64,000 nucleotides of DNA. Source: Macrostomum lignano (taxonomy: Eukaryota). The stretch is from contig NIVC01000514.1 of the NCBI GenBank assembly GCA_002269645.1, positions 434,001 to 498,000 on the forward strand, given 5' to 3'. Every line of letters begins with the position of its first letter. The first letter of the stretch is position 1. The notes under the pieces are model-generated. The model did no database searches and had not been told where the DNA came from. It worked only from the letters and a program-made list of their open reading frames with translations. Positions 32,925 to 64,000 of this stretch are shown here, piece by piece. Made by a program: the position numbers and the translations under genes.

Positions 32925-33180
32925 TTAGTTAGGGCTAGGTTTTAGGTTGGAGTTAGATTTTAGGTTAGGGCTAGGTTTTAAGTTGGAGTTAGATTTTAGG
33001 TTAGGGCTAGGTTTTAAGTTGGAGTTAGATTTTAGGTTAGGGCTAGGTTTTAGGTTGGAGTTATATTTTAGGTTAGGGCTAGGTTTTAGGTTGGAGTTAG
33101 ATTATGGGTTAGGGTTAGGGTTAGAGCTTAGGGATTTGAGTTTAGGATACGGTCTAGGTTAGTTTTAGGTAGGGTTAGGT
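32925..33180. repeat. TTAGG(G)-like degenerate array (36-bp higher-order unit)
   Basis: Unit ttggagttagattttaggttagggctaggttttaag. Confidence 0.85.
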
Positions 33181-42697: not shown

Positions 42698-43611
42698 TGC
42701 TGACGCTGTAGTCTCCCTACCGACAAGGAAAGGCGCTTTGTTGCTGACCAGTTTTGTCAGTGGTGTCCGCACAAAAGCCCTTCGTCGCACACGGTGATGC
42801 TGTTCTCAAGCTATTTAAGACCTAAAAAACAGAGCATTTTCACCGTAAATTTCTCCACTTCGGTAAACCATGCAATAAAAATGGAAGCCGACAGCAGATG
42901 GGTGTGCATGCAAATAGACGCTTTTCAAAACTGCCTTTAACAAAAAGGCAGTCAGCCTTCATTCCTCCAACAGTTGTCATAATTCAGGCGACTGGCAACT
43001 GTGGCCCAGTTGTGCGATCCGATAAAGAAACCGGCTCGATCGGCCGCCGCTGCCATTTAAGAGCCCTAAGTTAAAATGGAATCCTCATTTTCCCATTCAT
43101 CCCTTCTGTAGAAGCTGTTTGGAGGAGGATCAATAAGGGTTTTCTCTTCTTTTTTAGGGTCTAAGCAGCATGCTTTAGCGTTGTTTTTGTTGTTTGTTGT
43201 CTTTTCGCTTAATATTACAACCTCTTTGATGGTTGAATGATGTTTTCAATACACAAACATGCTGGTAAGTATCTGTAGAGCCTATTGTTTTTCAGTTTAT
43301 TCACGATGAGCGTCAAGTTATATTTTTTAAATCGTAATATTTTTTAAATAAAATTTCACAAAATAAATTCCTCTGAAAGTTACACATGTTAAAAATTAAA
43401 TTCTTTCCTTACAATCATTCAACATTACGCGGTAAGTTGGTTCAGTTATAACACTTCACAACAGAGAACATAAACAAAATGAGTAAAAAAGCATCCAGGC
43501 TGTAAGCATATCCCGGGTGCCAAAAAAATCTTGAGGCTCATGTCGACTTGTTAAGGCTTTATTAAGTATTGAAGTATTGAACCTGTGGAGTACATCCCGC
43601 AAATAGCCAGT

Positions 43612-44663: not shown

Positions 44664-47600
44664 TCAACGAGATTCGCCGAAGTAGCCGTCATTACTTGAC
44701 TCGGCCTGTCGTTTCTCGTCCGACTGCGCGAGCTCGACACTGGCGCCAGCTTGTCCAAGACCGAGCTTGGCGCTAGATTCTTGCTTACTCGAGCGCTCTT
44801 TGCTGTCGCCGTCTTTAGTTGACTCGGCCTGTCGCTTCTCGTCCGACTGCGCGAGCTCGACACTGGCGCCAGCTTGTCCAAGACCGAGCTTGGCGCTAGA
44901 TTCTTGCTTACTCGAGCGCTCTTTGCTGTCGCCGTCTTTAGTTGACTCGGCCTGTCGCTTCTCGTCCGACTGCGCGAGCTCGACACTGGCGCCAGCTTGT
45001 CCAAGACCGAGCTTGGCGCTAGATTCTTGCTTACTCGAGTGCTCTTTGCTGTCGCCGTCTTTAGTTGACTCGGCCTGTCGCTTCTCGTCCGACTGCGCGA
45101 GCTCGACACTGGCGCCAGCTTGTCCAAGACCGAGCTTGGCGCTAGATTCTTGCTTACTCGAGCGCTCTTTGCTGTCGCCGTCTTTAGTGACTCGGCTGTC
45201 GCTTCTCGTCCGACTGCGCGAGCTCGACACTGGCGCCAGCTTGTCCAAGACCGAGCTTGGCGCTAGATTCTTGCTTACTCGAGCGCTCTTTGCTGTCGCC
45301 GTCTTTAGTTGACTCGGCCTGTCGCTTCTCGTCCGACTGCGCGAGCTCGACACTGGCGCCAGCTTGTCCAAGACCGAGCTTGGCGCTAGATTCTTGCTTA
45401 CTCGAGCGCTCTTTGCTGTCGCCGTCTTTAGTTGACTCGGCCTGTCGCTTCTCGTCCGACTGCGCGAGCTCGACACTGGCGCCAGCTTGTCCAAGACCGA
45501 GCTTGGCGCTAGATTCTTGCTTACTCGAGCGCTCTTTGCTGTCGCCGTCTTTAGTTGACTCGGCCTGTCGCTTCTCGTCCGACTGCGCGAGCTCGACACT
45601 GGCGCCAGCTTGTCCAAGACCGAGCTTGGCGCTAGATTCTTGCTTACTCGAGCGCTCTTTGCTGTCGCCGTCTTTAGTTGACTCGGCCTGTCGCTTCTCG
45701 TCCGACTGCGCGAGCTCGACACTGGCGCCAGCTTGTCCAAGACCGAGCTTGGCGCTAGATTCTTGCTTACTCGAGCGCTCTTTGCTGTCGCCGTCTTTAG
45801 TTGACTCGGCCTGTCGCTTCTCGTCCGACTGCGCGAGCTCGACACTGGCGCCAGCTTGTCCAAGACCGAGCTTGGCGCTAGATTCTTGCTTACTCGAGCG
45901 CTCTTTGCTGTCGCCGTCTTTAGTTGACTCGGCCTGTCGCTTCTCGTCCGACTGCGCGAGCTCGACACTGGCGCCAGCTTGTCCAAGACCGAGCTTGGCG
46001 CTAGATTCTTGCTTACTCGAGCGCTCTTTGCTGTCGCCGTCTTTAGTTGACTCGGCCTGTCGCTTCTCGTCCGACTGCGCGAGCTCGACACTGGCGCCAG
46101 CTTTCCAAGACCGAGCTTGGCGCTAGATTCTTGCTTACTCGAGCGCTCTTTGCTGTCGCCGTCTTTAGTTGACTCGGCCTGTCGCTTCTCGTCCGACTGC
46201 GCGAGCTCGACACTGGCGCCAGCTTGTCCAAGACCGAGCTTGGCGCTAGATTCTTGCTTACTCGAGCGCTCTCTGCGGTCGCCGTCTTTAGTTGACTCGG
46301 CCTGTCGCTTCTCGTCCGACTGCGCGAGCTCGACACTGGCGCCAGCTTGTCCAAGACCGAGCTTGGCGCTAGATTCTTGCTTACTCGAGCGCTCTCTGCG
46401 GTCGCCGTCTTTAGTTGACTCGGCCTGTCGCTTCTCGTCCGACTGCGCGAGCTCGACACTGGCGCCAGCTTGTCCAAGACCGAGCTTGGCGCTAGATTCT
46501 TGCTTACTCGAGCGCTCTTTGCGTCGCCGTCTTTAGTTGACTCGGCCTGTCGCTTCTCGTCCGACTGCGCGAGCTCGACACTGGCGCCAGCTTGTCCAAG
46601 ACCGAGCTTGGCGCTAGATTCTTGCTTACTCGAGCGCTCTTTGCTGTCGCCGTCTTTAGTTGACTCGGCCTGTCGCTTCTCGTCCGACTGCGCGAGCTCG
46701 ACACTGGCGCCAGCTTGTCCAAGACCGAGCTTGGCGCTAGATTCTTGCTTACTCGAGCGCTCTTTGCTGTCGCCGTCTTTAGTTGACTCGGCCTGTCGCT
46801 TCTCGTCCGACTGCGCGAGCTCGACACTGGCGCCAGCTTTCCAAGACCGAGCTTGGCGCTAGATTCTTGCTTACTCGAGCGCTCTTTGCTGTCGCCGTCT
46901 TTAGTTGACTCGGCCTGTCGCTTCTCGTCCGACTGCGCGAGCTCGACACTGGCGCCAGCTTTCCAAGACCGAGCTTGGCGCTAGATTCTTGCTTACTCGA
47001 GCGCTCTTTGCTGTCGCCGTCTTTAGTTGACTCGGCCTGTCGCTTCTCGTCCGACTGCGCGAGCTCGACACTGGCGCCAGCTTTCCAAGACCGAGCTTGG
47101 CGCTAGATTCTTGCTTACTCGAGCGCTCTTTGCTGTCGCCGTCTTTAGTTGACTCGGCCTGTCGCTTCTCGTCCGACTGCGCGAGCTCGACACTGGCGCC
47201 AGCTTGTCCAAGACCGAGCTTGGCGCTAGATTCTTGCTTACTCGAGCGCTCTTTGCTGTCGCCGTCTTTAGTTGACTCGGCCTGTCGCTTCTCGTCCGAC
47301 TGCGCGAGCTCGACACTGGCGCCAGCTTGTCCAAGACCGAGCTTGGCGCTAGATTCTTGCTTACTCGAGCGCTCTTTGCTGTCGCCGTCTTTAGTTGACT
47401 CGGCCTGTCGCTTCTCGTCCGACTGCGCGAGCTCGACACTGGCGCCAGCTTGTCCAAGACCGAGCTTGGCGCTAGATTCTTGCTTACTCGAGCGCTCTTT
47501 GCTGTCGCCGTCTTTAGTTGACTCGGCCTGTCGCTTCTCGTCCGACTGCGCGAGCTCGACACTGGCGCCAGCTTTCCAAGACCGAGCTTGGCGCTAGATT

Positions 47601-50600
47601 CTTGCTTACTCGAGCGCTCTTTGCTGTCGCCGTCTTTAGTTGACTCGGCCTGTCGCTTCTCGTCCGACTGCGCGAGCTCGACACTGGCGCCAGCTTGTCC
47701 AAGACCGAGCTTGGCGCTAGATTCTTGCTTACTCGAGCGCTCTTTGCTGTCGCCGTCTTTAGTTGACTCGGCCTGTCGCTTCTCGTCCGACTGCGCGAGC
47801 TCGACACTGGCGCCAGCTTGTCCAAGACCGAGCTTGGCGCTAGATTCTTGCTTACTCGAGCGCTCTTTGCTGTCGCCGTCTTTAGTTGACTCGGCCTGTC
47901 GCTTCTCGTCCGACTGCGCGAGCTCGACACTGGCGCCAGCTTTCCAAGACCGAGCTTGGCGCTAGATTCTTGCTTACTCGAGCGCTCTTTGCTGTCGCCG
48001 TCTTTAGTTGACTCGGCCTGTCGCTTCTCGTCCGACTGCGCGAGCTCGACACTGGCGCCAGCTTGTCCAAGACCGAGCTTGGCGCTAGATTCTTGCTTAC
48101 TCGAGCGCTCTTTGCTGTCGCCGTCTTTAGTTGACTCGGCCTGTCGCTTCTCGTCCGACTGCGCGAGCTCGACACTGGCGCCAGCTTGTCCAAGACCGAG
48201 CTTGGCGCTAGATTCTTGCTTACTCGAGCGCTCTTTGCTGTCGCCGTCTTTAGTTGACTCGGCCTGTCGCTTCTCGTCCGACTGCGCGAGCTCGACACTG
48301 GCGCCAGCTTGTCCAAGACCGAGCTTGGCGCTAGATTCTTGCTTACTCGAGCGCTCTTTGCTGTCGCCGTCTTTAGTTGACTCGGCCTGTCGCTTCTCGT
48401 CCGACTGCGCGAGCTCGACACTGGCGCCAGCTTGTCCAAGACCGAGCTTGGCGCTAGATTCTTGCTTACTCGAGCGCTCTTTGCTGTCGCCGTCTTTAGT
48501 TGACTCGGCCTGTCGCTTCTCGTCCGACTGCGCGAGCTCGACACTGGCGCCAGCTTGTCCAAGACCGAGCTTGGCGCTAGATTCTTGCTTACTCGAGCGC
48601 TCTTTGCTGTCGCCGTCTTTAGTTGACTCGGCCTGTCGCTTCTCGTCCGACTGCGCGAGCTCGACACTGGCGCCAGCTTGTCCAAGACCGAGCTTGGCGC
48701 TAGATTCTTGCTTACTCGAGCGCTCTTTGCTGTCGCCGTCTTTAGTTGACTCGGCCTGTCGCTTCTCGTCCGACTGCGCGAGCTCGACACTGGCGCCAGC
48801 TTGTCCAAGACCGAGCTTGGCGCTAGATTCTTGCTTACTCGAGCGCTCTTTGCTGTCGCCGTCTTTAGTTGACTCGGCCTGTCGCTTCTCGTCCGACTGC
48901 GCGAGCTCGACACTGGCGCCAGCTTGTCCAAGACCGAGCTTGGCGCTAGATTCTTGCTTACTCGAGCGCTCTTTGCTGTCGCCGTCTTTAGTTGACTCGG
49001 CCTGTCGCTTCTCGTCCGACTGCGCGAGCTCGACACTGGCGCCAGCTTGTCCAAGACCGAGCTTGGCGCTAGATTCTTGCTTACTCGAGCGCTCTTTGCT
49101 GTCGCCGTCTTTAGTTGACTCGGCCTGTCGCTTCTCGTCCGACTGCGCGAGCTCGACACTGGCGCCAGCTTGTCCAAGACCGAGCTTGGCGCTAGATTCT
49201 TGCTTACTCGAGCGCTCTTTGCTGTCGCCGTCTTTAGTTGACTCGGCCTGTCGCTTCTCGTCCGACTGCGCGAGCTCGACACTGGCGCCAGCTTTCCAAG
49301 ACCGAGCTTGGCGCTAGATTCTTGCTTACTCGAGCGCTCTTTGCTGTCGCCGTCTTTAGTTGACTCGGCCTGTCGCTTCTCGTCCGACTGCGCGAGCTCG
49401 ACACTGGCGCCAGCTTGTCCAAGACCGAGCTTGGCGCTAGATTCTTGCTTACTCGAGCGCTCTTTGCTGTCGCCGTCTTTAGTTGACTCGGCCTGTCGCT
49501 TCTCGTCCGACTGCGCGAGCTCGACACTGGCGCCAGCTTGTCCAAGACCGAGCTTGGCGCTAGATTCTTGCTTACTCGAGCGCTCTTTGCTGTCGCCGTC
49601 TTTAGTTGACTCGGCCTGTCGCTTCTCGTCCGACTGCGCGAGCTCGACACTGGCGCCAGCTTGTCCAAGACCGAGCTTGGCGCTAGATTCTTGCTTACTC
49701 GAGCGCTCTTTGCTGTCGCCGTCTTTAGTTGACTCGGCCTGTCGCTTCTCGTCCGACTGCGCGAGCTCGACACTGGCGCCAGCTTTCCAAGACCGAGCTT
49801 GGCGCTAGATTCTTGCTTACTCGAGCGCTCTTTGCTGTCGCCGTCTTTAGTTGACTCGGCCTGTCGCTTCTCGTCCGACTGCGCGAGCTCGACACTGGCG
49901 CCAGCTTGTCCAAGACCGAGCTTGGCGCTAGATTCTTGCTTACTCGAGCGCTCTTTGCTGTCGCCGTCTTTAGTTGACTCGGCCTGTCGCTTCTCGTCCG
50001 ACTGCGCGAGCTCGACACTGGCGCCAGCTTGTCCAAGACCGAGCTTGGCGCTAGATTCTTGCTTACTCGAGCGCTCTTTGCTGTCGCCGTCTTTAGTTGA
50101 CTCGGCCTGTCGCTTCTCGTCCGACTGCGCGAGCTCGACACTGGCGCCAGCTTGTCCAAGACCGAGCTTGGCGCTAGATTCTTGCTTACTCGAGCGCTCT
50201 TTGCTGTCGCCGTCTTTAGTTGACTCGGCCTGTCGCTTCTCGTCCGACTGCGCGAGCTCGACACTGGCGCCAGCTTGTCCAAGACCGAGCTTGGCGCTAG
50301 ATTCTTGCTTACTCGAGCGCTCTTTGCTGTCGCCGTCTTTAGTTGACTCGGCCTGTCGCTTCTCGTCCGACTGCGCGAGCTCGACACTGGCGCCAGCTTG
50401 TCCAAGACCGAGCTTGGCGCTAGATTCTTGCTTACTCGAGCGCTCTTTGCTGTCGCCGTCTTTAGTTGACTCGGCCTGTCGCTTCTCGTCCGACTGCGCG
50501 AGCTCGACACTGGCGCCAGCTTGTCCAAGACCGAGCTTGGCGCTAGATTCTTGCTTACTCGAGCGCTCTTTGCTGTCGCCGTCTTTAGTTGACTCGGCCT

Positions 50601-53600
50601 GTCGCTTCTCGTCCGACTGCGCGAGCTCGACACTGGCGCCAGCTTGTCCAAGACCGAGCTTGGCGCTAGATTCTTGCTTACTCGAGCGCTCTTTGCTGTC
50701 GCCGTCTTTAGTTGACTCGGCCTGTCGCTTCTCGTCCGACTGCGCGAGCTCGACACTGGCGCCAGCTTGTCCAAGACCGAGCTTGGCGCTAGATTCTTGC
50801 TTACTCGAGCGCTCTTTGCTGTCGCCGTCTTTAGTTGACTCGGCCTGTCGCTTCTCGTCCGACTGCGCGAGCTCGACACTGGCGCCAGCTTGTCCAAGAC
50901 CGAGCTTGGCGCTAGATTCTTGCTTACTCGAGCGCTCTTTGCTGTCGCCGTCTTTAGTTGACTCGGCCTGTCGCTTCTCGTCCGACTGCGCGAGCTCGAC
51001 ACTGGCGCCAGCTTGTCCAAGACCGAGCTTGGCGCTAGATTCTTGCTTACTCGAGCGCTCTTTGCTGTCGCCGTCTTTAGTTGACTCGGCCTGTCGCTTC
51101 TCGTCCGACTGCGCGAGCTCGACACTGGCGCCAGCTTGTCCAAGACCGAGCTTGGCGCTAGATTCTTGCTTACTCGAGCGCTCTTTGCTGTCGCCGTCTT
51201 TAGTTGACTCGGCCTGTCGCTTCTCGTCCGACTGCGCGAGCTCGACACTGGCGCCAGCTTGTCCAAGACCGAGCTTGGCGCTAGATTCTTGCTTACTCGA
51301 GCGCTCTTTGCTGTCGCCGTCTTTAGTTGACTCGGCCTGTCGCTTCTCGTCCGACTGCGCGAGCTCGACACTGGCGCCAGCTTGTCCAAGACCGAGCTTG
51401 GCGCTAGATTCTTGCTTACTCGAGCGCTCTTTGCTGTCGCCGTCTTTAGTTGACTCGGCCTGTCGCTTCTCGTCCGACTGCGCGAGCTCGACACTGGCGC
51501 CAGCTTGTCCAAGACCGAGCTTGGCGCTAGATTCTTGCTTACTCGAGCGCTCTTTGCTGTCGCCGTCTTTAGTTGACTCGGCCTGTCGCTTCTCGTCCGA
51601 CTGCGCGAGCTCGACACTGGCGCCAGCTTGTCCAAGACCGAGCTTGGCGCTAGATTCTTGCTTACTCGAGCGCTCTTTGCTGTCGCCGTCTTTAGTTGAC
51701 TCGGCCTGTCGCTTCTCGTCCGACTGCGCGAGCTCGACACTGGCGCCAGCTTGTCCAAGACCGAGCTTGGCGCTAGATTCTTGCTTACTCGAGCGCTCTT
51801 TGCTGTCGCCGTCTTTAGTTGACTCGGCCTGTCGCTTCTCGTCCGACTGCGCGAGCTCGACACTGGCGCCAGCTTGTCCAAGACCGAGCTTGGCGCTAGA
51901 TTCTTGCTTACTCGAGCGCTCTTTGCTGTCGCCGTCTTTAGTTGACTCGGCCTGTCGCTTCTCGTCCGACTGCGCGAGCTCGACACTGGCGCCAGCTTGT
52001 CCAAGACCGAGCTTGGCGCTAGATTCTTGCTTACTCGAGCGCTCTTTGCTGTCGCCGTCTTTAGTTGACTCGGCCTGTCGCTTCTCGTCCGACTGCGCGA
52101 GCTCGACACTGGCGCCAGCTTGTCCAAGACCGAGCTTGGCGCTAGATTCTTGCTTACTCGAGCGCTCTTTGCTGTCGCCGTCTTTAGTTGACTCGGCCTG
52201 TCGCTTCTCGTCCGACTGCGCGAGCTCGACACTGGCGCCAGCTTGTCCAAGACCGAGCTTGGCGCTAGATTCTTGCTTACTCGAGCGCTCTTTGCTGTCG
52301 CCGTCTTTAGTTGACTCGGCCTGTCGCTTCTCGTCCGACTGCGCGAGCTCGACACTGGCGCCAGCTTGTCCAAGACCGAGCTTGGCGCTAGATTCTTGCT
52401 TACTCGAGCGCTCTTTGCTGTCGCCGTCTTTAGTTGACTCGGCCTGTCGCTTCTCGTCCGACTGCGCGAGCTCGACACTGGCGCCAGCTTGTCCAAGACC
52501 GAGCTTGGCGCTAGATTCTTGCTTACTCGAGCGCTCTTTGCTGTCGCCGTCTTTAGTTGACTCGGCCTGTCGCTTCTCGTCCGACTGCGCGAGCTCGACA
52601 CTGGCGCCAGCTTGTCCAAGACCGAGCTTGGCGCTAGATTCTTGCTTACTCGAGCGCTCTTTGCTGTCGCCGTCTTTAGTTGACTCGGCCTGTCGCTTCT
52701 CGTCCGACTGCGCGAGCTCGACACTGGCGCCAGCTTGTCCAAGACCGAGCTTGGCGCTAGATTCTTGCTTACTCGAGCGCTCTTTGCTGTCGCCGTCTTT
52801 AGTTGACTCGGCCTGTCGCTTCTCGTCCGACTGCGCGAGCTCGACACTGGCGCCAGCTTGTCCAAGACCGAGCTTGGCGCTAGATTCTTGCTTACTCGAG
52901 CGCTCTTTGCTGTCGCCGTCTTTAGTTGACTCGGCCTGTCGCTTCTCGTCCGACTGCGCGAGCTCGACACTGGCGCCAGCTTGTCCAAGACCGAGCTTGG
53001 CGCTAGATTCTTGCTTACTCGAGCGCTCTTTGCTGTCGCCGTCTTTAGTTGACTCGGCCTGTCGCTTCTCGTCCGACTGCGCGAGCTCGACACTGGCGCC
53101 AGCTTGTCCAAGACCGAGCTTGGCGCTAGATTCTTGCTTACTCGAGCGCTCTTTGCTGTCGCCGTCTTTAGTTGACTCGGCCTGTCGCTTCTCGTCCGAC
53201 TGCGCGAGCTCGACACTGGCGCCAGCTTGTCCAAGACCGAGCTTGGCGCTAGATTCTTGCTTACTCGAGCGCTCTTTGCTGTCGCCGTCTTTAGTTGACT
53301 CGGCCTGTCGCTTCTCGTCCGACTGCGCGAGCTCGACACTGGCGCCAGCTTGTCCAAGACCGAGCTTGGCGCTAGATTCTTGCTTACTCGAGCGCTCTTT
53401 GCTGTCGCCGTCTTTAGTTGACTCGGCCTGTCGCTTCTCGTCCGACTGCGCGAGCTCGACACTGGCGCCAGCTTGTCCAAGACCGAGCTTGGCGCTAGAT
53501 TCTTGCTTACTCGAGCGCTCTTTGCTGTCGCCGTCTTTAGTTGACTCGGCCTGTCGCTTCTCGTCCGACTGCGCGAGCTCGACACTGGCGCCAGCTTGTC

Positions 53601-56600
53601 CAAGACCGAGCTTGGCGCTAGATTCTTGCTTACTCGAGCGCTCTTTGCTGTCGCCGTCTTTAGTTGACTCGGCCTGTCGCTTCTCGTCCGACTGCGCGAG
53701 CTCGACACTGGCGCCAGCTTGTCCAAGACCGAGCTTGGCGCTAGATTCTTGCTTACTCGAGCGCTCTTTGCTGTCGCCGTCTTTAGTTGACTCGGCCTGT
53801 CGCTTCTCGTCCGACTGCGCGAGCTCGACACTGGCGCCAGCTTGTCCAAGACCGAGCTTGGCGCTAGATTCTTGCTTACTCGAGCGCTCTTTGCTGTCGC
53901 CGTCTTTAGTTGACTCGGCCTGTCGCTTCTCGTCCGACTGCGCGAGCTCGACACTGGCGCCAGCTTGTCCAAGACCGAGCTTGGCGCTAGATTCTTGCTT
54001 ACTCGAGCGCTCTTTGCTGTCGCCGTCTTTAGTTGACTCGGCCTGTCGCTTCTCGTCCGACTGCGCGAGCTCGACACTGGCGCCAGCTTGTCCAAGACCG
54101 AGCTTGGCGCTAGATTCTTGCTTACTCGAGCGCTCTTTGCTGTCGCCGTCTTTAGTTGACTCGGCCTGTCGCTTCTCGTCCGACTGCGCGAGCTCGACAC
54201 TGGCGCCAGCTTGTCCAAGACCGAGCTTGGCGCTAGATTCTTGCTTACTCGAGCGCTCTTTGCTGTCGCCGTCTTTAGTTGACTCGGCCTGTCGCTTCTC
54301 GTCCGACTGCGCGAGCTCGACACTGGCGCCAGCTTGTCCAAGACCGAGCTTGGCGCTAGATTCTTGCTTACTCGAGCGCTCTTTGCTGTCGCCGTCTTTA
54401 GTTGACTCGGCCTGTCGCTTCTCGTCCGACTGCGCGAGCTCGACACTGGCGCCAGCTTGTCCAAGACCGAGCTTGGCGCTAGATTCTTGCTTACTCGAGC
54501 GCTCTTTGCTGTCGCCGTCTTTAGTTGACTCGGCCTGTCGCTTCTCGTCCGACTGCGCGAGCTCGACACTGGCGCCAGCTTGTCCAAGACCGAGCTTGGC
54601 GCTAGATTCTTGCTTACTCGAGCGCTCTTTGCTGTCGCCGTCTTTAGTTGACTCGGCCTGTCGCTTCTCGTCCGACTGCGCGAGCTCGACACTGGCGCCA
54701 GCTTGTCCAAGACCGAGCTTGGCGCTAGATTCTTGCTTACTCGAGCGCTCTTTGCTGTCGCCGTCTTTAGTTGACTCGGCCTGTCGCTTCTCGTCCGACT
54801 GCGCGAGCTCGACACTGGCGCCAGCTTGTCCAAGACCGAGCTTGGCGCTAGATTCTTGCTTACTCGAGCGCTCTTTGCTGTCGCCGTCTTTAGTTGACTC
54901 GGCCTGTCGCTTCTCGTCCGACTGCGCGAGCTCGACACTGGCGCCAGCTTGTCCAAGACCGAGCTTGGCGCTAGATTCTTGCTTACTCGAGCGCTCTTTG
55001 CGTCGCCGTCTTTAGTTGACTCGGCCTGTCGCTTCTCGTCCGACTGCGCGAGCTCGACACTGGCGCCAGCTTGTCCAAGACCGAGCTTGGCGCTAGATTC
55101 TTGCTTACTCGAGCGCTCTTTGCTGTCGCCGTCTTTAGTTGACTCGGCCTGTCGCTTCTCGTCCGACTGCGCGAGCTCGACACTGGCGCCAGCTTGTCCA
55201 AGACCGAGCTTGGCGCTAGATTCTTGCTTACTCGAGCGCTCTTTGCTGTCGCCGTCTTTAGTTGACTCGGCCTGTCGCTTCTCGTCCGACTGCGCGAGCT
55301 CGACACTGGCGCCAGCTTGTCCAAGACCGAGCTTGGCGCTAGATTCTTGCTTACTCGAGCGCTCTTTGCTGTCGCCGTCTTTAGTTGACTCGGCCTGTCG
55401 CTTCTCGTCCGACTGCGCGAGCTCGACACTGGCGCCAGCTTGTCCAAGACCGAGCTTGGCGCTAGATTCTTGCTTACTCGAGCGCTCTTTGCTGTCGCCG
55501 TCTTTAGTTGACTCGGCCTGTCGCTTCTCGTCCGACTGCGCGAGCTCGACACTGGCGCCAGCTTGTCCAAGACCGAGCTTGGCGCTAGATTCTTGCTTAC
55601 TCGAGCGCTCTTTGCTGTCGCCGTCTTTAGTTGACTCGGCCTGTCGCTTCTCGTCCGACTGCGCGAGCTCGACACTGGCGCCAGCTTGTCCAAGACCGAG
55701 CTTGGCGCTAGATTCTTGCTTACTCGAGCGCTCTTTGCTGTCGCCGTCTTTAGTTGACTCGGCCTGTCGCTTCTCGTCCGACTGCGCGAGCTCGACACTG
55801 GCGCCAGCTTGTCCAAGACCGAGCTTGGCGCTAGATTCTTGCTTACTCGAGCGCTCTTTGCTGTCGCCGTCTTTAGTTGACTCGGCCTGTCGCTTCTCGT
55901 CCGACTGCGCGAGCTCGACACTGGCGCCAGCTTGTCCAAGACCGAGCTTGGCGCTAGATTCTTGCTTACTCGAGCGCTCTTTGCTGTCGCCGTCTTTAGT
56001 TGACTCGGCCTGTCGCTTCTCGTCCGACTGCGCGAGCTCGACACTGGCGCCAGCTTGTCCAAGACCGAGCTTGGCGCTAGATTCTTGCTTACTCGAGCGC
56101 TCTTTGCTGTCGCCGTCTTTAGTTGACTCGGCCTGTCGCTTCTCGTCCGACTGCGCGAGCTCGACACTGGCGCCAGCTTGTCCAAGACCGAGCTTGGCGC
56201 TAGATTCTTGCTTACTCGAGCGCTCTTTGCGTCGCCGTCTTTAGTTGACTCGGCCTGTCGCTTCTCGTCCGACTGCGCGAGCTCGACACTGGCGCCAGCT
56301 TGTCCAAGACCGAGCTTGGCGCTAGATTCTTGCTTACTCGAGCGCTCTTTGCTGTCGCCGTCTTTAGTTGACTCGGCCTGTCGCTTCTCGTCCGACTGCG
56401 CGAGCTCGACACTGGCGCCAGCTTGTCCAAGACCGAGCTTGGCGCTAGATTCTTGCTTACTCGAGCGCTCTTTGCTGTCGCCGTCTTTAGTTGACTCGGC
56501 CTGTCGCTTCTCGTCCGACTGCGCGAGCTCGACACTGGCGCCAGCTTGTCCAAGACCGAGCTTGGCGCTAGATTCTTGCTTACTCGAGCGCTCTTTGCGT

Positions 56601-59600
56601 CGCCGTCTTTAGTTGACTCGGCCTGTCGCTTCTCGTCCGACTGCGCGAGCTCGACACTGGCGCCAGCTTGTCCAAGACCGAGCTTGGCGCTAGATTCTTG
56701 CTTACTCGAGCGCTCTTTGCTGTCGCCGTCTTTAGTTGACTCGGCCTGTCGCTTCTCGTCCGACTGCGCGAGCTCGACACTGGCGCCAGCTTTTCCAAGA
56801 CCGAGCTTGGCGCTAGATTCTTGCTTACTCGAGCGCTCTCTGCGGTCGCCGTCTTTAGTTGACTCGGCCTGTCGCTTCTCGTCCGACTGCGCGAGCTCGA
56901 CACTGGCGCCAGCTTTCCAAGACCGAGCTTGGCGCTAGATTCTTGCTTACTCGAGCGCTCTTTGCTGTCGCCGTCTTTAGTTGACTCGGCCTGTCGCTTC
57001 TCGTCCGACTGCGCGAGCTCGACACTGGCGCCAGCTTGTCCAAGACCGAGCTTGGCGCTAGATTCTTGCTTACTCGAGCGCTCTTTGCTGTCGCCGTCTT
57101 TAGTTGACTCGGCCTGTCGCTTCTCGTCCGACTGCGCGAGCTCGACACTGGCGCCAGCTTGTCCAAGACCGAGCTTGGCGCTAGATTCTTGCTTACTCGA
57201 GCGCTCTTTGCTGTCGCCGTCTTTAGTTGACTCGGCCTGTCGCTTCTCGTCCGACTGCGCGAGCTCGACACTGGCGCCAGCTTTTCCAAGACCGAGCTTG
57301 GCGCTAGATTCTTGCTTACTCGAGCGCTCTTTGCTGTCGCCGTCTTTAGTTGACTCGGCCTGTCGCTTCTCGTCCGACTGCGCGAGCTCGACACTGGCGC
57401 CAGCTTTTCCAAGACCGAGCTTGGCGCTAGATTCTTGCTTACTCGAGCGCTCTTTGCTGTCGCCGTCTTTAGTTGACTCGGCCTGTCGCTTCTCGTCCGA
57501 CTGCGCGAGCTCGACACTGGCGCCAGCTTTTCCAAGACCGAGCTTGGCGCTAGATTCTTGCTTACTCGAGCGCTCTTTGCTGTCGCCGTCTTTAGTTGAC
57601 TCGGCCTGTCGCTTCTCGTCCGACTGCGCGAGCTCGACACTGGCGCCAGCTTGTTCGCCTGTGACGCATAGTTTTTCTGATGTAGTTTGATTATCTTTTT
57701 TAAAGGCGAAACTCGTTTTTGATTCGTCCTTAGATAGGTGTATTCCTTGTCTTGAGGTGGACTTTGTTTTAGTTAGAGCTCCTTCTTTGGTTTCTTTTTC
57801 CTTTTTGTATATCCCGATTTGCTTTGTTTGATCGCCTGCGCCGGCCTCGACCTCGTATTGTCCGTGGCCTAGGGTTAATGCAACTTCTTGTTCATTGGTT
57901 CTTGCTGCTATTTTATGTTTTCCCTTTTTTACTTTGGCTTCCGTTCCCATGGATCCGTGCGTGATGCCTAATTGAGTGTCGTTGCGTTGTACCGATAAAC
58001 CGAAGTCATCATCTGCTGTTTTAACTTTTAGCTGATACTGCTTTCTTTTTAATTTGATGCCATCTCCAGACAACTCCACTTTGGTATCCTTTGGTGCGTT
58101 AGGCTTCTTCGGTTTTTTTACTTGCTGTTTGTATTTTCTTGGCATGGAGGAATGATTCATCTTGTTTTGCTTATTAGCAGTTGATAATGTTTTCGAGAGA
58201 GTTCTCTTGGCTTGATCTACGGCTTGGCTTGTCATGTCTCCTATGCTCTTTCTTAAATAATCCTCTAGTATAGCACTGACTACTTCGCTGGTTTGCGACC
58301 GCATTTGCTGCCCGACTTTGCTTGTCAGTTGGCTGAGATGCTCCTTATTTCTCATGTTTTTTTCCTTTAGCTTGAGATTAGGGTTGTACTCGATTTCCCA
58401 ATCGTCGCTTCCGTCAATTAAAATGCCATCTATATTTTTTACAATGTTCCCAACGACAGTTCTCAAGTTCTCAACGTGCACTCCGATGGCTGCTGCATCC
58501 ACCGCCACGGCTGCCAGCCTGAGGAAAACTAGGAGCCCTTTAAAGTGTTCTGCTAATTCAGAGTTTAAATTGCTCAGATATGACTTTATTGTATCCATGA
58601 CCTTTTCCATCGCTTCTGCATCGTGCAGAACTTGGTGTGCTGCCTCTTCCGTGGCTTCTTTAAGTGCCTTCAATACACTGGTTTGCAGCTCCGGAGTAAG
58701 CATGGAGAAATCGAATACATTCATTTTTTCCGTCTCTTGATTTTTCTGCACGCACATGGGAGCTGCTATTCGAACAACAATGTCGTACAGCCTTCCTCGC
58801 TGGGCTTCTTCCTCGCATTTTCCCTCGATATCGGCTTCAACATTCTTCTTCAACTTAGAAATTAAACTGTCAATGAGCCGTCTTTGAGCATCAGTTACAG
58901 CAAAGTCTGCTAAAAACTTAAACACGGGATTGTCTACTATACCTTTGAGCACTTTTACTGTATTTTCTCCAACCAACTTTGTGACCACAGATCCAGCTTT
59001 GGAATAGTATTTACTTCCGACTGAACTCATATTTTTCGCCACTGCTCCGAACTTTGTCGATAATTTTAAGTACCCAATAACTTTACTAAAGCCGAAAGTA
59101 AGTAGGGATAAGCCAATGTTTAGAGCCTTGCTTTTCAACCAAGACGTAGAATCAAATTCTCCTTTAAGTAAACCCATGGTACCGGCCAATATGTCACTGA
59201 AGCCTTCGAAGACTAAGTTAACACCGCCAACAGAACTCATAACGCAGCCAATGGCGATCTCGATTAGACCTAAAATTATTACCGCGATCGCGAATCGATA
59301 CTGGGGTTTCTTCATCACACTGAATAGCCTCACGTGACCCAATAAATAGAGTGACCTCAGCTCATCAAGTGTAATTCTGTCTGGGTCTTTCTCGATGTCC
59401 TTTATACAAGTGCTGATAGCGACGATTTGGCAATCTTTTAATTCTTCAAGCTTTTTTAAACTTTGTTCAATTCCAGCTTTGTACTTGAGGATAATATCAA
59501 TCCTAGTAGTACATTGGCCGAATAGTGCACTTTTATCAGACTTTTCATCCAATTTGAATGCTTGATCGGATGTAACCTCTTGATCAGCCTGATCCACTTG

Positions 59601-62600
59601 ATCTGTTTGATCGGATGTAACCTCTTGATCAGCCTGATCCACTTGATCTGTTTGATCGGATGTAACCTTTTGATCAGCCTGATCCACTTGATCTGTTTGA
59701 TCGGATGTAACCTTTTGATCAGCCTGATCCACTTGATCTGTTTGATCGGATGTAACCTTTTGATCAGCCTGATCCACTTGATCTGTTTGATCGGATGTAA
59801 CCTCTTGATCAGCCTGATCCACTTGATCAGCTTGATCCACTTGATCTGTTTCATCCGCTTTTAATCTTGCTCCAGAAAAAAACTGAGTCCACAAGGCGTG
59901 GGCTAGCCACGTTTCCTTAATTCTTGTTTTGGCTTCCTGCAAGTCGTTTTTGATATCTTCAATGCCGCTATCACCTTTCATTATCTTCGCATACGCTCTA
60001 TTGTAGTAGGCTATTGAAGACCAGGCGCAATTCATTGCAATAGCTGTAGTATATAAATCAATTGCTTTTTGGAAATCCTCTTGTCGTAAACATTTGTCCG
60101 CAAGTTTTAGAGTTTGAAACGGACTCATTAAACAATCTGATTCAATATTTTTTGTGGCGTCCTTGAAAGTTTCCTTGACTTCTCTAATATACTTGTCTGT
60201 GTTTGGTTTGCTAAAGTCGGCAGTGTGGCACAAAATTGTCTTTAGATGCATTCCCCAGATTTCTTTCAGACAGTTTAATTTGAGCTTTAGGTCTATATCA
60301 TCCTTATTTGCCTGGCGGTACTTTGTTAATGAGCGACTGAAGCGACGAAACAGACTTTCCTTGAATTCTACTTCAGGCATAGAAAATTCCGTATGATTTC
60401 GCAGCTCTTGTAAACTGGCCTCCCGCCTCACTTGCTTCATCTCCTCTACCGAGTCGCAGTCAGCAAAGCAAGCGCTAAGACCCTCCTGGCTTAGAATTAA
60501 TGTCGCAGAACCCCGCTGACCCTTGCGTCCACTGCGACCACACACTTGCTCCTCGACTCGCTGATTCAAGGGGAGAAATGTGACAAGTACGTGCAGACCT
60601 CCAGCTGCCTCTGCTTCATCGTTTACTTTCACGTCCGTGCCTCTGCCTGCCAAATTCGTGGCCACAATCACATCTCCTGGACCAACAATCAGCTCAGACT
60701 TTGTATCTTCGTTCCTGATGTACCTTTTAGGCGTAACCCCGTGACATCGGCGAGTTACCTCGTTGAGAACGAGATCAGCACTGTTTATGTCCTCACAAAC
60801 AATCAGAGTTGGCCGGTGCCTTTCCTTCTTTACTAGCTGGCAAAGCTTTGAGATGCACTCAGATTTGGTTTCGGTGACAATGCCCGGGTTCTCTACTAGC
60901 CGGCGTTCCCTGAACGGAGGAATATAGTTTAGCTGTACTTTGTAGGTTTTGCGCATGAACTCCTTCTCGTGCTCCTCCCCGAGAGTCCCAGAAACGCCGA
61001 ACACCGCGGTGCCATACCGACGGAAAAAATATAAATTTGATAAAAAGTTTGTTTCTAAACCAAGAGGTCTCATTTGTAGACGATGCTTCAGCTGCAGGAA
61101 CTGCTGCAGTCCATCGCTCCATCTCATGTTTTCTTGAACCACACCTGTGTGCTTGAAGTCCACAGGCACAGCATCTCCGTCCTGCAAGAGGTAGTCGCGT
61201 CCGGGCTGCAGAACTCCTGCGGTGAGAGCACTGTTGATCCAGACGTCAAGCATATCGTCGATGAACCCTTTCAGGTGTTTTGGCATCGGCAGTTGCTTTT
61301 CCTTGCTAGTTACTTCCGTTTTAGAGTCGTCAGTTGAATCCTTTAAGGATGTGCTGTAATTAATTTGGGATTGAACATCCTCTCTTTTTTTCGAAATGAA
61401 GTCCTCAATATTGGCGAACAGCAATCTGCAGACACCGCCTTGGTTCACGAGAAGATGCGTGGAACAGTCTTCTGAATGCTCCAGTGGTTCTATTTCCGCA
61501 TTTCTGTAGATGTAGATGTTGCACCTGGGAAACTGGAGCAAGGAATCTGCGGCAGTGGTTAGAATTTCTCTTACTCTGCCGATATCGAATTGAGATAAAT
61601 CAACGGGATCTACAGTCTGATTCAAGAAGTCCTTCTTTTCCTCTGAGTTTATCAGTTCTTTCTGAAGTAGCGTTTCAATTAACTCATTGAATTCCTCATC
61701 GGACGTTAGTTCTTTAAGGAAGTAGAGAAATGTCATTGCCTGCTCTGCAACCATTTCACCTCCATGCACGGTGTTTAGAACCTGACAACCGAATGTGGCT
61801 CTGAAAATCGTCGGAAAAACTGGGTCCAGCATTTTCATGTCTCCCACATCCTGAGAAAGATACGTTAGCTGCACTCCCTGGTCGAGCAGCAGTGAATCGA
61901 CCTCATCCACAATAACTGCGTCGAAGCTTCTTGTGCCACGAATTTCTTTAAACTGGAACTCGTGCCGCAAAACGTCACCTGCAAATGAAGACACCGTGCC
62001 ATACACTATTTTGGACTCATAACACTCTTTTGGTTTTTTATGATTAATGTTGCAGCTAACGGTAACTTTGCATTCTTGATAAAAATCGTGCCATTCTTGG
62101 CAGTCTCTTTCAGCCAGAACTTCAGAGGGTGCAACGACGTCAACTGACGTCCTCCCGAGAAGCAGAAGTCCGACGGCGGTCATTGCCACAATGCACGATT
62201 TTCCTTCGCCAGTCAGAATCTGCAAAATTTGTCCAAATTTCTTGCTAGCAGAGCTTTTGAGCAAGGCAGCAGCACTGAGAAGTTGAGTGTTCCGCGGAAG
62301 ATATCCTTTACATTTTCTCACTGCCTTTGACAGATCAATCAAAATTTTGTGCAATGGTGGTTCCTTTCCACGCTCCCATAGTTTGATTTTGCTAAGCTTT
62401 TCGGTGATAGTTTTTTTTGCTTTGCTAAATCCGGACATATCAAAATATTTCGCGGTTTTACTGACGACATCTTCAAGCTCGGAAAGCTGATCGTCTTCAA
62501 ATCCTCCTGATTCCTTAAGTTCAGCTAGAAGCTCGCCGAGAGTCCTCTGCGCTGCCTGATCCTTTTCAAGTCGCTCAATGGTGGCCTTTGAAATAGTCTC

Positions 62601-64000
62601 GCTGGAATCCAGAAGACCTTTCAAATCGCAGCGGCTCAAAATCATCATCTGGACGACCTGTCTTACTTGATCAGGTGTCGAGTCACTAGAGTGAATGAGC
62701 TCCATTAGCTTGAGCGTGCTTGCCGAATCCCAGTGATGCATTGACAGAATGAGCTCAACCACACATTCGGTGTCCGATTTGTTATCAAGATAGTCGGCGA
62801 TGCCAGCAGTTTTCAGCATTGCTATCAAGACGGATCGGAGTCTCTTCAAGTCGGTGTCTGTATTCTGGGTAGGCCAGAGTCGAGTAATATCTTCAGCCAC
62901 TAAGAGTAGCTTGAGCAGAATTTTTATGACAGGAGTTGTCTCATTCTGCTTTTTTGCCATTAGCAGCTTATCCAGATGCTCTATGGCACAATTTGTGTCA
63001 CGGAACTGACGATAAAGTTCATCCATCTCATCTTCGTTCGAAAGGTCTTCAGCGGGTTCCTCTTTAAATAAAAGCAAAACCAGCAAGCCATAATACACCA
63101 TGTCGATTTCTGTTTTCGGAAAGCAAAATTCTATGAGAACCTTGTTTGCAGCGTCTACCACTTGGCCAGCCGACTCTTCATCTAGCAGCTTCAGAAGCGA
63201 CAAGTGTGTCGCCATTTGATTCTCTTTATTGGGCTGAGGAATTCGTGACTTCCAATGACTATAAAAATGATTCAGGAATTGCGATCTTGAAACGGCTTCT
63301 ACAGTTCTCAAAGCATTTTGACCACTCGCATTCTGACTTGCGTCTTTGAGACGGGTAAAAACATCTCCGACAGCATTTTCAATGCTTTTATCTATTTGGC
63401 TCCTGATATCTGCAACAGTAGCATCGGAAACTCCAAGGCTTGCATAGTCTTTTGCACACTTGCCGCGCACATGCTGTATCGAGACTCTCAAGCCTTTGAA
63501 CAATCTCTGCATTTCTTTTGCTCTATGGTTTTCCCTTGCTGTTGCCACCTGCCGTCCAAATTTCTCTGTTTTCTGTAGGTTCTCAGACGCTTGCTGATTT
63601 CTCCTTATCTTTGCTCGCTGCTCTTCAATTCTTCTTGAGATATCGGCCTCTCTTTCAGCTAGTTCAGCTTCGAACTCTCTTCTTCCTTTTTCAAGCTCCT
63701 CCTGCTGCGACTGCAGTCTCTTCTTCATCTCCAAGCTATGCTCTTCCATCTCAATCTGCTTCTTCTGCATCTCGCTCTGAAAGCGATCTTTCCTTTCTTT
63801 AAACTGCGCTTGCAGACGAGCTCTGTGTTGATCAGCTTCCGCATTGAGGCTGTTAAACCTTGCACTTGTCTCTGACGTAATCCGCTCCTTTTGGTGCCGA
63901 AAGCTTTCCAGTCTTTCCATTCGAATCTTTTCCACCTCTTTTTGTTCCTCCAGCAAATCCTGTTGGCCTTTATATTTCCAGTCTGTCTTTTGCTTCTGCA
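44664..64000 (-). CDS. Giant SecA-like (SecA_DEAD / SF2 helicase-fold ATPase) protein with TPR-like motif, hydrophobic helical segment and C-terminal 41-aa tandem repeats; 5'-incomplete; 1-bp frameshifts inside the repeat array as assembled
   Basis: ORF 56580..63956 is also stop-free from 63956 to the window edge. SecA motifs occur in order: QILTGEGKS (~62196-62222), IVDEVDS (~61896-61910), RDYLLQDGDAVPVDFKHTGVVQENMRWSDGLQQFLQLKH (cf. bacterial SecA DYIV.DG.V.IVD..TGR....RWSDGLHQA.EAKE), FGVSGTLG, VATNLAGRGTDVK, EEQVCGRSGRKGQRG. The reading frame enters the 123-bp array at ~57654, and the last unit ends ...AESSNDGYFGESR-TGA at 44664. Confidence 0.85.
44685..57654 (-). repeat. 123-bp coding tandem repeat, ~105 copies (41-aa unit GQAGASVELAQSDEKRQAESTKDGDSKERSSKQESSAKLGL)
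   Basis: The period of 123 nt is read directly from the sequence. About 12.97 kb / 123 gives ~105 copies. The core (~49.8-54.9 kb) is apparently identical copy to copy; variants cluster towards both ends. Confidence 0.97.
59562..59850 (-). repeat. 45-bp coding repeat x6 (DQTDQVDQADQ[E/K]VTS) inside the SecA-like ORF
   Basis: In-frame 15-aa repeat visible in the translation and in DNA (ttgatcggatgtaacc...tgatcagcctgatccacttgatctgt). Confidence 0.95.

Follow-up and report, generated by a model that had tools for sequence, protein, structure and literature searches.

A SecA-derived motor paired with a conserved hydrophobic block in a giant protein of the flatworm Macrostomum lignano

Organisation of the locus

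The minus strand of a 64,000-nucleotide stretch of the Macrostomum lignano genome (contig NIVC01000514.1, positions 434,001 to 498,000; 'the window') carries a long gene whose predicted product joins a SecA-type ATPase motor to helical modules, a Gly-rich hydrophobic block and a very long tandem-repeat tail (Table 1). The reading frame has no intron, is open at the window edge (63998) and runs for 2,472 codons to a stop at 56580. W denotes the translation of 63998 down to 56583, in which residue i starts at nucleotide 63998-3(i-1). Judged from its paralogue P0001, the protein is probably about 220 N-terminal residues short at the window edge. The initial annotation of this DNA let the feature begin at 57655, but it continues far below this position, across the whole of the repeat array.

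Table 1. Features of the W gene and of the window (NBD, nucleotide-binding domain; PPXD, preprotein-crosslinking domain; pLDDT, predicted local distance difference test score; LINE, long interspersed nuclear element)
Feature	Residues of W	Window position	Strand	Basis
Highly charged alpha-helical segment, open at window edge	1-170	63489..63998	-	Aligns to P0001 220-390
All-helical pre-core region	171-545	62364..63488	-	Helices, pLDDT mostly <70 before model residue 300; no Pfam match
NBD1, SecA-type	546-735	61794..62363	-	Q motif, Walker A, Walker B; Pfam, alignments, model
Q motif PRNTQ		62283-62297	-	
Walker A TGEGKS	596-601	62196-62213	-	
Walker B DEVD	698-701	61896-61907	-	
PPXD-like alpha/beta insertion in NBD1, enlarged, divergent, ending in WSDGL	736-970	61089..61793	-	Pfam, model
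WSDGL	960-964	61107-61121	-	
End of NBD1 and NBD2	971-1180	60459..61088	-	GRGTD, motif VI; 87% identity to paralogue
GRGTD	1118-1122	60633-60647	-	
Motif VI GRSGRKGQRG	1154-1163	60510-60539	-	
Post-NBD2 helices: one of 47 residues and two shorter	1181-1290	60129..60458	-	AlphaFold model; scaffold-equivalent, divergent
TPR-like four-helix module	1291-1375	59874..60128	-	Conserved across family; homologue matches and model
Acidic linker, 15-amino-acid (45-nt) repeat DQTDQVDQADQKVTS, ~6 copies		59562..59860	-	Tandem-repeat search; lineage-specific
Small alpha/beta element and Gly-rich hydrophobic block	1489-1700	58899..59534	-	Alignment, profile search
Predicted transmembrane helix FAIAVIILGLIEIAIGCVM	1569-1587	59238-59294	-	Strongest 19-mer, Kyte-Doolittle 2.70
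EGFSD of the block		59193-59207	-	
Helical post-block region	1701-1960	58119..58898	-	Partly common to fish homologues; low-confidence model
Second hydrophobic helix		58479-58535	-	
Lys-rich 'beta-rich block', degenerate 41-amino-acid repeat copies	1975-2116	57651..58076	-	By-eye comparison
123-nt (41-amino-acid) tandem tail, unit AGASVELAQSDEKRQAESTKDGDSKERSSKQESSAKLGLG[KQ], 106 units		44667..57654	-	Tandem-repeat search, unit measurement
LINE-like element		40515-42790	-	Pfam
Degenerate telomere-like TTAGG(G)/CCCTAA-type arrays		17102-17659, 32928-33119, 37528-37931		

The SecA-type motor

All SecA nucleotide-binding motifs and the WSDGL segment had been reported in the initial annotation, and every one of them can be located on the minus strand. 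Pfam recognises SecA_DEAD in W with 93.7 bits (cut-off 24.6; E 1.6e-26) and P-loop_SecA with 35.8 bits (cut-off 27). SecA_PP_bind (PF01043) just passes, at 23.6 bits for a cut-off of 23.5, and covers only the last ~50 residues of the insertion in NBD1; pairwise alignments identify W735-900 as the variable part across the family. Residues that are invariant in alignments with canonical SecA include Q572, TGEGK, D698/E699/D701, R1119, Q1151, G1154 and R1158. The motor is thus SecA-like and looks catalytically competent, and its intact ATP-binding and hydrolysis residues would provide for ATPase activity.

The fold points in the same direction. An AlphaFold2 model of W176-1375, built on an alignment of 48 sequences, has a mean pLDDT of 79 and a predicted template modelling (TM) score of 0.74, with values mostly above 85 from about model residue 300. 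The insertion at the PPXD site is modelled as confident strands and helices (model residues 545-795), and the helices that follow NBD2 occupy model residues 1009-1055, 1062-1083 and 1089-1111, followed by the four TPR-like helices. A sequence search of the PDB with W returns SecA and SecA2 only (E 7e-37). In a Foldseek search of the PDB the best 36 matches are all SecA or SecA2 (best E 1e-25), with alignments of ~940 columns against SecA chains of 750-780 residues; the top target-normalised TM-scores belong to SecY-engaged SecA (5eul 0.61, 6itc 0.60, 3dl8 0.59).

The folds that come after SecA in the Foldseek search are UvrB, DinG, RIG-I and MDA5, at E 2e-7 to 1e-5. Together with a Pfam DEAD match of 33.6 bits (above its cut-off), a weak Helicase_C match and the APOBEC-like deaminase payload of one family member, these could be taken as signs of a nucleic-acid-dependent superfamily 2 helicase or sensor, similar to RIG-I or DinG. 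We consider this most improbable: the SecA matches are better by at least 18 orders of magnitude, the DEAD score is far below that of SecA_DEAD, three features specific to SecA (the PPXD insertion, WSDGL and the scaffold helix) are conserved throughout the family, and no nucleic-acid-binding domain was detected.

Departure from canonical SecA

In SecA, both NBDs turn ATP hydrolysis into movements of a clamp made up of the PPXD, NBD2 and the scaffold helix; the clamp grips unfolded polypeptide and advances it into a membrane channel. Animals have Sec61 and not SecYEG. The giant family to which W belongs retains the clamp parts of SecA, is without the wing domain and the SecB/ribosome-binding tail, and has gained a hydrophobic block of its own.

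The NCBIfam SecA and SecA2 models score W at 107-150 bits, against curated cut-offs of 725-1493 (150 against 862 and 128 against 800 for the equivalog models TIGR00963 and NF009538), with an envelope that extends to profile position 744 of 789. Pfam found neither SecA_SW (PF07516) nor the SEC-C zinc tail (PF02810) in W. All canonical SecA database matches carry PF07516 and most carry PF02810, whereas the giant family has neither, and in the model the ~110 residues of helices between NBD2 and the TPR module leave no space for a wing domain. W scores 200-478 bits against giant-family members and ~100-120 bits against SecA. A neighbour-joining tree on 437 motor columns separates the giant family from canonical SecA with 95-100% bootstrap support; since its deep nodes are weak, we use this tree for that split, for the grouping of Macrostomum with vertebrates and for the interleaving of animal and bacterial members, and not for the direction or number of transfers.

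Scores below the cut-offs, the missing wing and zinc tail and the separate clade show that W is not a canonical SecA, in agreement with the initial annotation, which had set it apart from the SecYEG housekeeping motor. A genuine SecA driving SecYEG, whether from a contaminant or an organelle, would account for the full set of nucleotide-binding motifs and the SecA-like fold. It is effectively refuted by these same points (~150 bits at best), by the size of the protein (>2,400 amino acids) and its eukaryotic flanks, and by tblastn, which places plasmid-borne giant relatives far above secA.

SecA is the nearest relative of known structure. Compared with canonical SecA and SecA2 (PDB 1tf5, 5eul, 6itc), W shares NBD1 with its inserted PPXD, NBD2, all ATPase motifs and a long post-NBD2 helix. 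It differs in being only ~20% identical and below the curated family cut-offs, in having no wing domain, SEC-C zinc tail or detectable two-helix finger, in adding ~770 residues of N-terminal helical sequence, the TPR module, the hydrophobic block and a giant payload, and in being encoded by an animal.

A conserved chassis of motor and hydrophobic block

The closest database match to W is the M. lignano hypothetical protein P0001 (2,019 amino acids; 57-58% identity over 90% of the query). Further large proteins, labelled 'uncharacterized' or 'SecA-like', are found in teleosts (Acanthochromis, Danio and others) and a frog, in the chironomid Polypedilum, the beetle Zophobas, Daphnia, the fluke Opisthorchis and a nematode, and also in a metagenome-assembled genome of the Rickettsiaceae and among metagenomic giants. 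W has in common with the fish and frog proteins the last ~130 residues before the motor core, the motor, the post-motor helices, the TPR module, the block and some sequence beyond it; with the bacterial-type members it has in common the motor, the TPR module and the block.

The block had been described in the initial annotation as hydrophobic, Gly-rich and a membrane-type module fused to the motor, and it proves to be a domain conserved family-wide. An alignment of 150 residues from 12 members, including W, shows F.V..KP, a hydrophobic helix (LGL.QIA.G), G.GLI.EGISD.I.G and GEF.W..W...KAISIGVSL, with invariant G, G, G, D, K and K. In every member checked, a single strongly hydrophobic 19-mer lies 350-450 residues past motif VI. 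Basic residues stand ahead of this helix in W (..MKKPQYR-FAIAV..) and would make an N-in orientation more likely. Pfam scans of W and of the homologues gave no model for the block.

A profile of the block was searched exhaustively with HMMER against 1.84 billion cluster representatives, giving 1,160 matches at E <= 1e-3, 747 at <= 1e-10 and 121 at <= 1e-30. SecA_DEAD is present in 30 of the 33 long matches scanned with Pfam, and motor and block are therefore an obligate pair, which we term the chassis. W is very probably a functional member of this chassis family.

A partial protein from the rotifer Rotaria sp. Silwood1 (P0280) also matches the block profile (E 4.6e-18) and adds rotifers to the animal range. 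Bdelloid rotifers are known for abundant horizontal gene transfer.

In the neighbour-joining tree, W and P0001 are sister to the fish and frog clade (75% bootstrap). The insect proteins lie near the Rickettsiaceae sequence, Daphnia lies with other metagenomic giants, and Opisthorchis and the nematode join a set with toxin and ankyrin payloads (96% bootstrap); the animal members are thus not monophyletic. This interleaving of animal and bacterial members, along with the intron-less state of the genes in the flatworm and in one fish, suggests that such genes have repeatedly been exchanged between animals and intracellular bacteria.

The fish proteins P0002, P0003 and P0004 have a second, degenerate NBD1-like segment (~315-830) ahead of the main motor. 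W552-697 aligns twice to P0003 (315-454 and from 702 onward), suggesting an internal duplication of the N-terminal half of the motor.

Payloads and bacterial relatives

The region C-terminal to the block varies from member to member. It carries Ntox50 in P0023 and a YopJ/RickCE-like domain in P0017. Payloads in the subfamily of 3-5 thousand residues are RickCE-like (4), UCH (2), Ulp1-type C48 (1) and SseC (1), with ankyrin arrays in 4; in the fish-type set they are OTU (2), C48 (1), ApoL (1) and, in a different member from the ApoL one, an AID/APOBEC-like deaminase. The last of these lies at residues 2584-2693 of P0131 (best Pfam match SNAD4), downstream of the P0131 block at 1641-1784. W, whose payload consists of 41-residue repeats, shares this variability. 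The toxin-, effector- or immunity-like setting that the initial annotation envisaged holds for these relatives; within the window, W has no toxin Pfam match, and what follows it downstream is limited to the repeat array and a LINE-like element, with no immunity gene.

A frequent C-terminal domain of the fish-type and the 3-5-thousand-residue members has the form GH[YW]-x(~15)-NCLF with invariant His and Cys; Pfam calls it OTU in 2 of 19.

P0023 is encoded on a bacterial metagenome contig (ERZ23499044, L002), directly behind a SecA-like giant of 2,643 amino acids, and two MafI2 immunity genes follow it. Pfam found no other known trafficking domain in P0023. By domain content and gene order its layout is that of a canonical polymorphic toxin in which the chassis takes the position of the trafficking module. 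On the same contig (L002 1-16400), several small open reading frames past the MafI2 genes are possibly orphan immunity or toxin cassettes, and the N-terminus of P0023 may have been displaced by a frameshift into a 484-residue frame that overlaps its start.

In tblastn searches of plasmids, giant relatives reach E 1e-45 to 2e-66, against 1e-20 for ordinary secA. A 57-kb plasmid of Ca. Megaera polyxenophila (L087, CP113870.1) has a single 15.7-kb gene for a 'SecA-like domain protein'. On pRiCimp001 of a Rickettsia endosymbiont of Culicoides (L088, CP084574.1), the SecA-like gene lies between a 14.8-kb hypothetical gene, which comes first, and the genes of a recombinase and of a Tn3 transposase. 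Legionella geestiana and Ca. Bandiella each provide a further plasmid gene. These plasmid genes and the protein of the Rickettsiaceae metagenome-assembled genome are the nearest bacterial relatives. The tblastn search of a phage collection gave canonical secA-like genes only, the link to phage WO coming from the literature, and a GTDB genome search, seeded by a motif shared with housekeeping SecA, listed 80 loci (L005-L084), all ordinary secA.

A host gene under purifying selection

The view of the initial annotation that the SecA-type ATPase is part of a large multidomain animal protein, and not a contaminant, is borne out by its surroundings and by a second M. lignano locus (L001, NIVC01002610.1), whose architecture and repeat period (123 nt) are identical. 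A LINE-like element lies ~2 kb past the end of the repeat array. One of its open reading frames has a reverse transcriptase (RVT_1, E 3.7e-35) and the next, overlapping one has RNase H and zf-RVT, as in a fragmented non-LTR retrotransposon. A fish homologue is encoded by a single exon (7,824 nt for 2,607 amino acids) on a 30.6-Mb chromosome. Bacterial contamination was rejected on the strength of this homologue, the LINE-like element and the minisatellites of the window.

A codon comparison of W with L001 gives a proportion of nonsynonymous differences (pN) of 0.077 in NBD2, 0.136 in NBD1 and 0.19-0.32 elsewhere. The synonymous proportion (pS) is saturated at 0.65-0.93 (0.65 in the NBD2 region). 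With pN so low in the NBDs against saturated pS, the W motor is under strong purifying selection.

This selection bears on whether the gene might be a decaying relic of an endosymbiont transfer, without function in the worm. A relic would fit the absence of introns, the interleaving of animal with bacterial members in the tree, the plasmids of Rickettsiales and Legionella that carry the closest bacterial relatives next to transposases, and a repeat tail that is frameshifted as assembled. It would not be expected to keep more than 2,100 codons uninterrupted and all catalytic residues, nor a motor pN of 0.08-0.14 against saturated pS in comparison with a second Macrostomum locus of identical architecture. 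The array of the paralogue is frameshifted too, which points to assembly error. We regard a functionless relic as very unlikely.

Regions flanking the motor

The long coiled coil that the initial annotation saw running off the window survives as a charged helical segment open at the edge; 'coiled coil' is a description only, since a crude heptad score does not distinguish W1-170 (54% E/K/R/Q, 2.4% P/G) from other helical parts. The paralogue P0001 starts with MGNTGSK, followed by a ~110-residue domain without a Pfam match and ~290 residues of charged helix. We take MGNTGSK to fit the N-myristoylation consensus, G-{EDRKHPFYW}-x(2)-[STAGCN]-{P}. With a paralogue that begins in this way, a GTPase, the guess of the initial annotation, is improbable for the N-terminal part that W lacks. 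The final ~130 residues before the motor core recur in the fish and frog homologues, W410-565 aligning to fish P0002, P0004 and P0006.

The TPR-like motif of the initial annotation is weak in the W sequence (Pfam TPR_2, E 0.26) and gains its support from the homologues and from the four modelled helices: Pfam matched TPR in 8 of 14 members of the family set scanned, and alignments with fish and bacterial members run to about W1360. The acidic repeat that follows was confirmed as 6.1 copies of 45 nt (59562-59837). It is missing from P0001, whose linker is non-repetitive.

The repeat tail

The segment W1975-2116, initially described as a beta-rich block, is present. Its D-FGLSVQRNDTQLGITHGSMGTEAKVKKGKHKIAA aligns by eye to DSGVSVAAQHKDIALGVSHGSDSSTEVAASKGDSKLAV of the repeat at L001 (AVKAGDSGVSVAAQHKDIALGVSHGSDSSTEVAASKGDSKL), and on this comparison it is the degenerate proximal end of the array and not a separate ligand-binding domain.

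The giant repeat tail itself was recovered as 105.6 copies of 123 nt (44685-57654). Amongst the 105 units measured, 91 are 123 nt long, 13 are 122 nt and one is 121 nt. The recurrent types of short unit have lost one A from a run of four (nine units) or have GACGC for GACAGC (four units), which may be a systematic error of the consensus or true variation that unequal exchange has spread. As assembled, the frame leaves AGASVELAQSDEKRQAESTKDGDSKERSSKQESSAKLGLG[KQ] after six units for a nonsense-looking frame that ends at the stop at 56580. The sensible frame of the array would finish ...QAESSNDGYFGESR* near 44667, giving a predicted payload of about 4,300 residues of hydrophilic 41-residue repeats, which is probably long and unfolded.

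At L001 the annotated P0001 is cut by a frameshift at ~16042. The next open reading frame there continues the homology (W1850-1990) and enters an array of 57 units of 123 nt (AVKAGDSGVSVAAQHKDIALGVSHGSDSSTEVAASKGDSKL), in which the frame switches too. That the two arrays share this problem suggests consensus errors in near-perfect arrays, although this is not proven.

In view of this continuation at L001 16042-23463, the current model of the paralogue (BOX15_Mlig033771g1, P0001) appears truncated, and the real protein is probably longer than 4,400 amino acids. In the window, 44685-57654 is free of stops in several frames and produces huge spurious open reading frames on both strands (for example + 49799-55015, 1,738 amino acids).

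A possible mechanism

Our preferred reading, which we put forward tentatively and at a little under an even chance, is that W is the flatworm member of a conserved family of giant proteins in which a membrane-anchored, SecA-derived chassis carries a swappable payload. The chassis would consist of a SecA-derived motor (NBD1, PPXD-like clamp, NBD2 and scaffold helix), the TPR-like module, a linker and the block, the last contributing at least one strong transmembrane helix with basic residues ahead of it. The protein would sit on the cytosolic face of a membrane, anchored by its own hydrophobic block, and N-terminal myristoylation, suggested by the MGNTGSK of the paralogue, may provide a second anchor. 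There the ATP-driven, SecA-like clamp would thread polypeptide at the membrane. It would most likely act in cis, with the hydrophobic helix serving as an internal signal-anchor, and so export or expose its own C-terminal payload. The long, hydrophilic repeat payload of W would be an easy substrate for threading. In this scheme the ATPase activity, the way the protein inserts into and lies in the membrane, the threading, its cis mode and any part played in conflict or immunity of the worm are inferred. Self-export as the mechanism seems to us somewhat more likely to be wrong than right.

Several observations favour self-threading. The P0023 toxin must exit the cell that produces it and has no other trafficking module. 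Payload types that depend elsewhere on signal peptides sit behind the chassis; ApoL is one of these. Another is the SNAD4-type deaminase, which elsewhere uses a signal peptide (PMC5889660, an APOBEC paper with no mention of SecA). In addition, two independent groups have reached the idea of self-export or self-secretion for the SecA-like domains of giant bacterial proteins (PMC8195603; bioRxiv 10.1101/2023.11.21.568195).

A number of observations weigh against this scheme. The wing domain is absent by Pfam and in the model, a comparison of the family post-motor region with the SecA C-domain by hhalign is not significant (E 0.17), the sole piece aligned being the family L.E.W..WL helix with the SecA W.EHL helix, and a two-helix finger was not demonstrated by this comparison. 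An AlphaFold model of W1480-2115 (14-sequence alignment) has a pLDDT of 40.7 and gives no topology. Only one or two segments attain transmembrane-like hydrophobicity, and the conserved second helix of the block has invariant or near-invariant E and D. The repeat payload is frameshifted after six units as assembled, which leaves an error of assembly or a short payload as explanations. Many payloads (deubiquitinases, Ulp1-like peptidases, ankyrin arrays) act in the eukaryotic cytosol, which, for members encoded by eukaryotes, fits a payload that is not exported. Finally, eukaryotes insert internal signal-anchors co-translationally by the signal recognition particle and Sec61, with no need of a motor. 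Our confidence in the mechanism is limited by the model that fails to give a topology, the acidic second helix, the ubiquitin-directed payloads and this motor-free route of insertion.

Several of these observations would be accommodated if the chassis formed an anchored machine that faces the cytosol throughout. The block would then be a hairpin or monotopic element, both ends of the protein would be cytosolic, and the clamp would unfold or extract clients at an organelle or vacuole membrane for processing by the payload enzymes, in the manner of unfoldase-deubiquitinase pairs; the repeat tail of the worm protein would be a cytosolic scaffold. The dominance of ubiquitin- and SUMO-directed peptidases and ankyrin arrays amongst the payloads suits this arrangement, as does the amphipathic second helix of the block, whose conserved E, D and K are atypical for a plain membrane span, and a myristoylation-type N-terminus, as in the paralogue, stays at the cytosolic leaflet. 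However, such a machine leaves unexplained a polymorphic-toxin member with immunity genes, which must leave the producer cell, and payload types that are secreted elsewhere (the SNAD4-type deaminase and ApoL; PMC5889660), and no client-binding adaptor was identified. It is the main rival of self-export, and on balance we think it rather unlikely.

A stronger form of the self-export scheme would make the animal proteins a self-contained, Sec61-independent device for export or injection in host-microbe conflict, with a block that possibly forms a channel. Its origin would lie in acquisition from, or exchange with, the mobile elements of intracellular bacteria. Its payloads would be immune-type enzymes and pore-formers (APOBEC-like deaminase, ApoL, deubiquitinases) in the vertebrate type and a repeat of more than 4,000 residues in Macrostomum. 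We hold this extended version to be unlikely.

Should own-payload threading be correct, it would be a new principle of secretion or delivery common to endosymbiont effectors and animal proteins, and would clearly exemplify the exchange of conflict machinery between domains. SecA is the textbook case of a translocation motor restricted to bacteria and plastids, and here an intact SecA-derived motor is kept under purifying selection in animal genomes, whilst the same chassis is the only candidate trafficking module of the bacterial polymorphic toxin P0023 and is also found on plasmids of Rickettsiales and Legionella. Mechanism aside, the putative membrane block is conserved across upwards of 1,000 representative clusters and, as far as we have found, has neither a Pfam name nor a description. 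M. lignano lends itself to experiments (in situ hybridisation, RNAi, transgenesis), and the self-export hypothesis is thus directly testable.

Relation to described systems

The initial annotation considered this an undescribed system. This was overstated, since homologues are public as 'uncharacterized' or 'SecA-like' proteins and SecA-like domains have been mentioned in passing in several papers. Effectors of Amoebophilus have SecA-like domains (PMC3482391). The eukaryotic association module of phage WO (wHa_3920/3930) includes a SecA domain reported to be closer to invertebrate than to bacterial proteins (PMC5062602). Legionella fallonii lfa2470, SecA DEAD-like, is listed among eukaryote-like genes (PMC4256840), and a Daphnia transcript with a 'SecA DEAD-like domain' appears in a differential-expression table (PMC5037449). 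By description, the effectors of intracellular bacteria (PMC3482391, PMC5062602, PMC4256840) belong to the same general family, but there the domain is only listed, with nothing on the TPR module and block, the payload logic or an animal branch. In the open-access literature we found no paper on the animal family, on a chassis of TPR module and block, or on the payload logic. As far as we have found, then, the family is known but uncharacterised, and the description of the chassis appears to be new.

The giant SecA_DEAD and PP_bind proteins of Omnitrophota and Actinobacteria (bioRxiv 10.1101/2023.11.21.568195; PMC8195603) are similar in placing the motor within a giant protein, without a wing or scaffold Pfam domain, and in their adjoining hydrophobic segments and varied enzymatic domains. 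Compared by description, they differ in their length (tens of thousands of residues), in the large number of their transmembrane segments and in their carbohydrate-active domains, and none is eukaryotic.

The likeness to polymorphic toxin systems (PMC3482391) lies in P0023, with its chassis in the trafficking position, C-terminal Ntox50 and two downstream MafI2 genes, and in the variation of payload behind a constant chassis across the family. The window protein differs from these systems in its lack of a recognisable toxin domain or immunity gene and in its low-complexity repeat payload. The secondary SecA_DEAD proteins of Planctomycetes and Verrucomicrobia (PMC4452313) are likewise non-housekeeping and presumed to serve specialised export, but they are stand-alone and are defined by a type I secretion system neighbourhood, of a kind not observed near the bacterial relatives examined.

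Other features of the window

The first part of the window (1-38000) is exceptionally rich in minisatellites, with 39 TRF rows at a score of at least 200 and periods of 4-107 nt. The same part contains the three degenerate telomere-like arrays of Table 1. The G+C fraction falls to 0.29 at 8-10 kb and to 0.36-0.39 at 26-32 kb, and reaches 0.66 at 24-26 kb.

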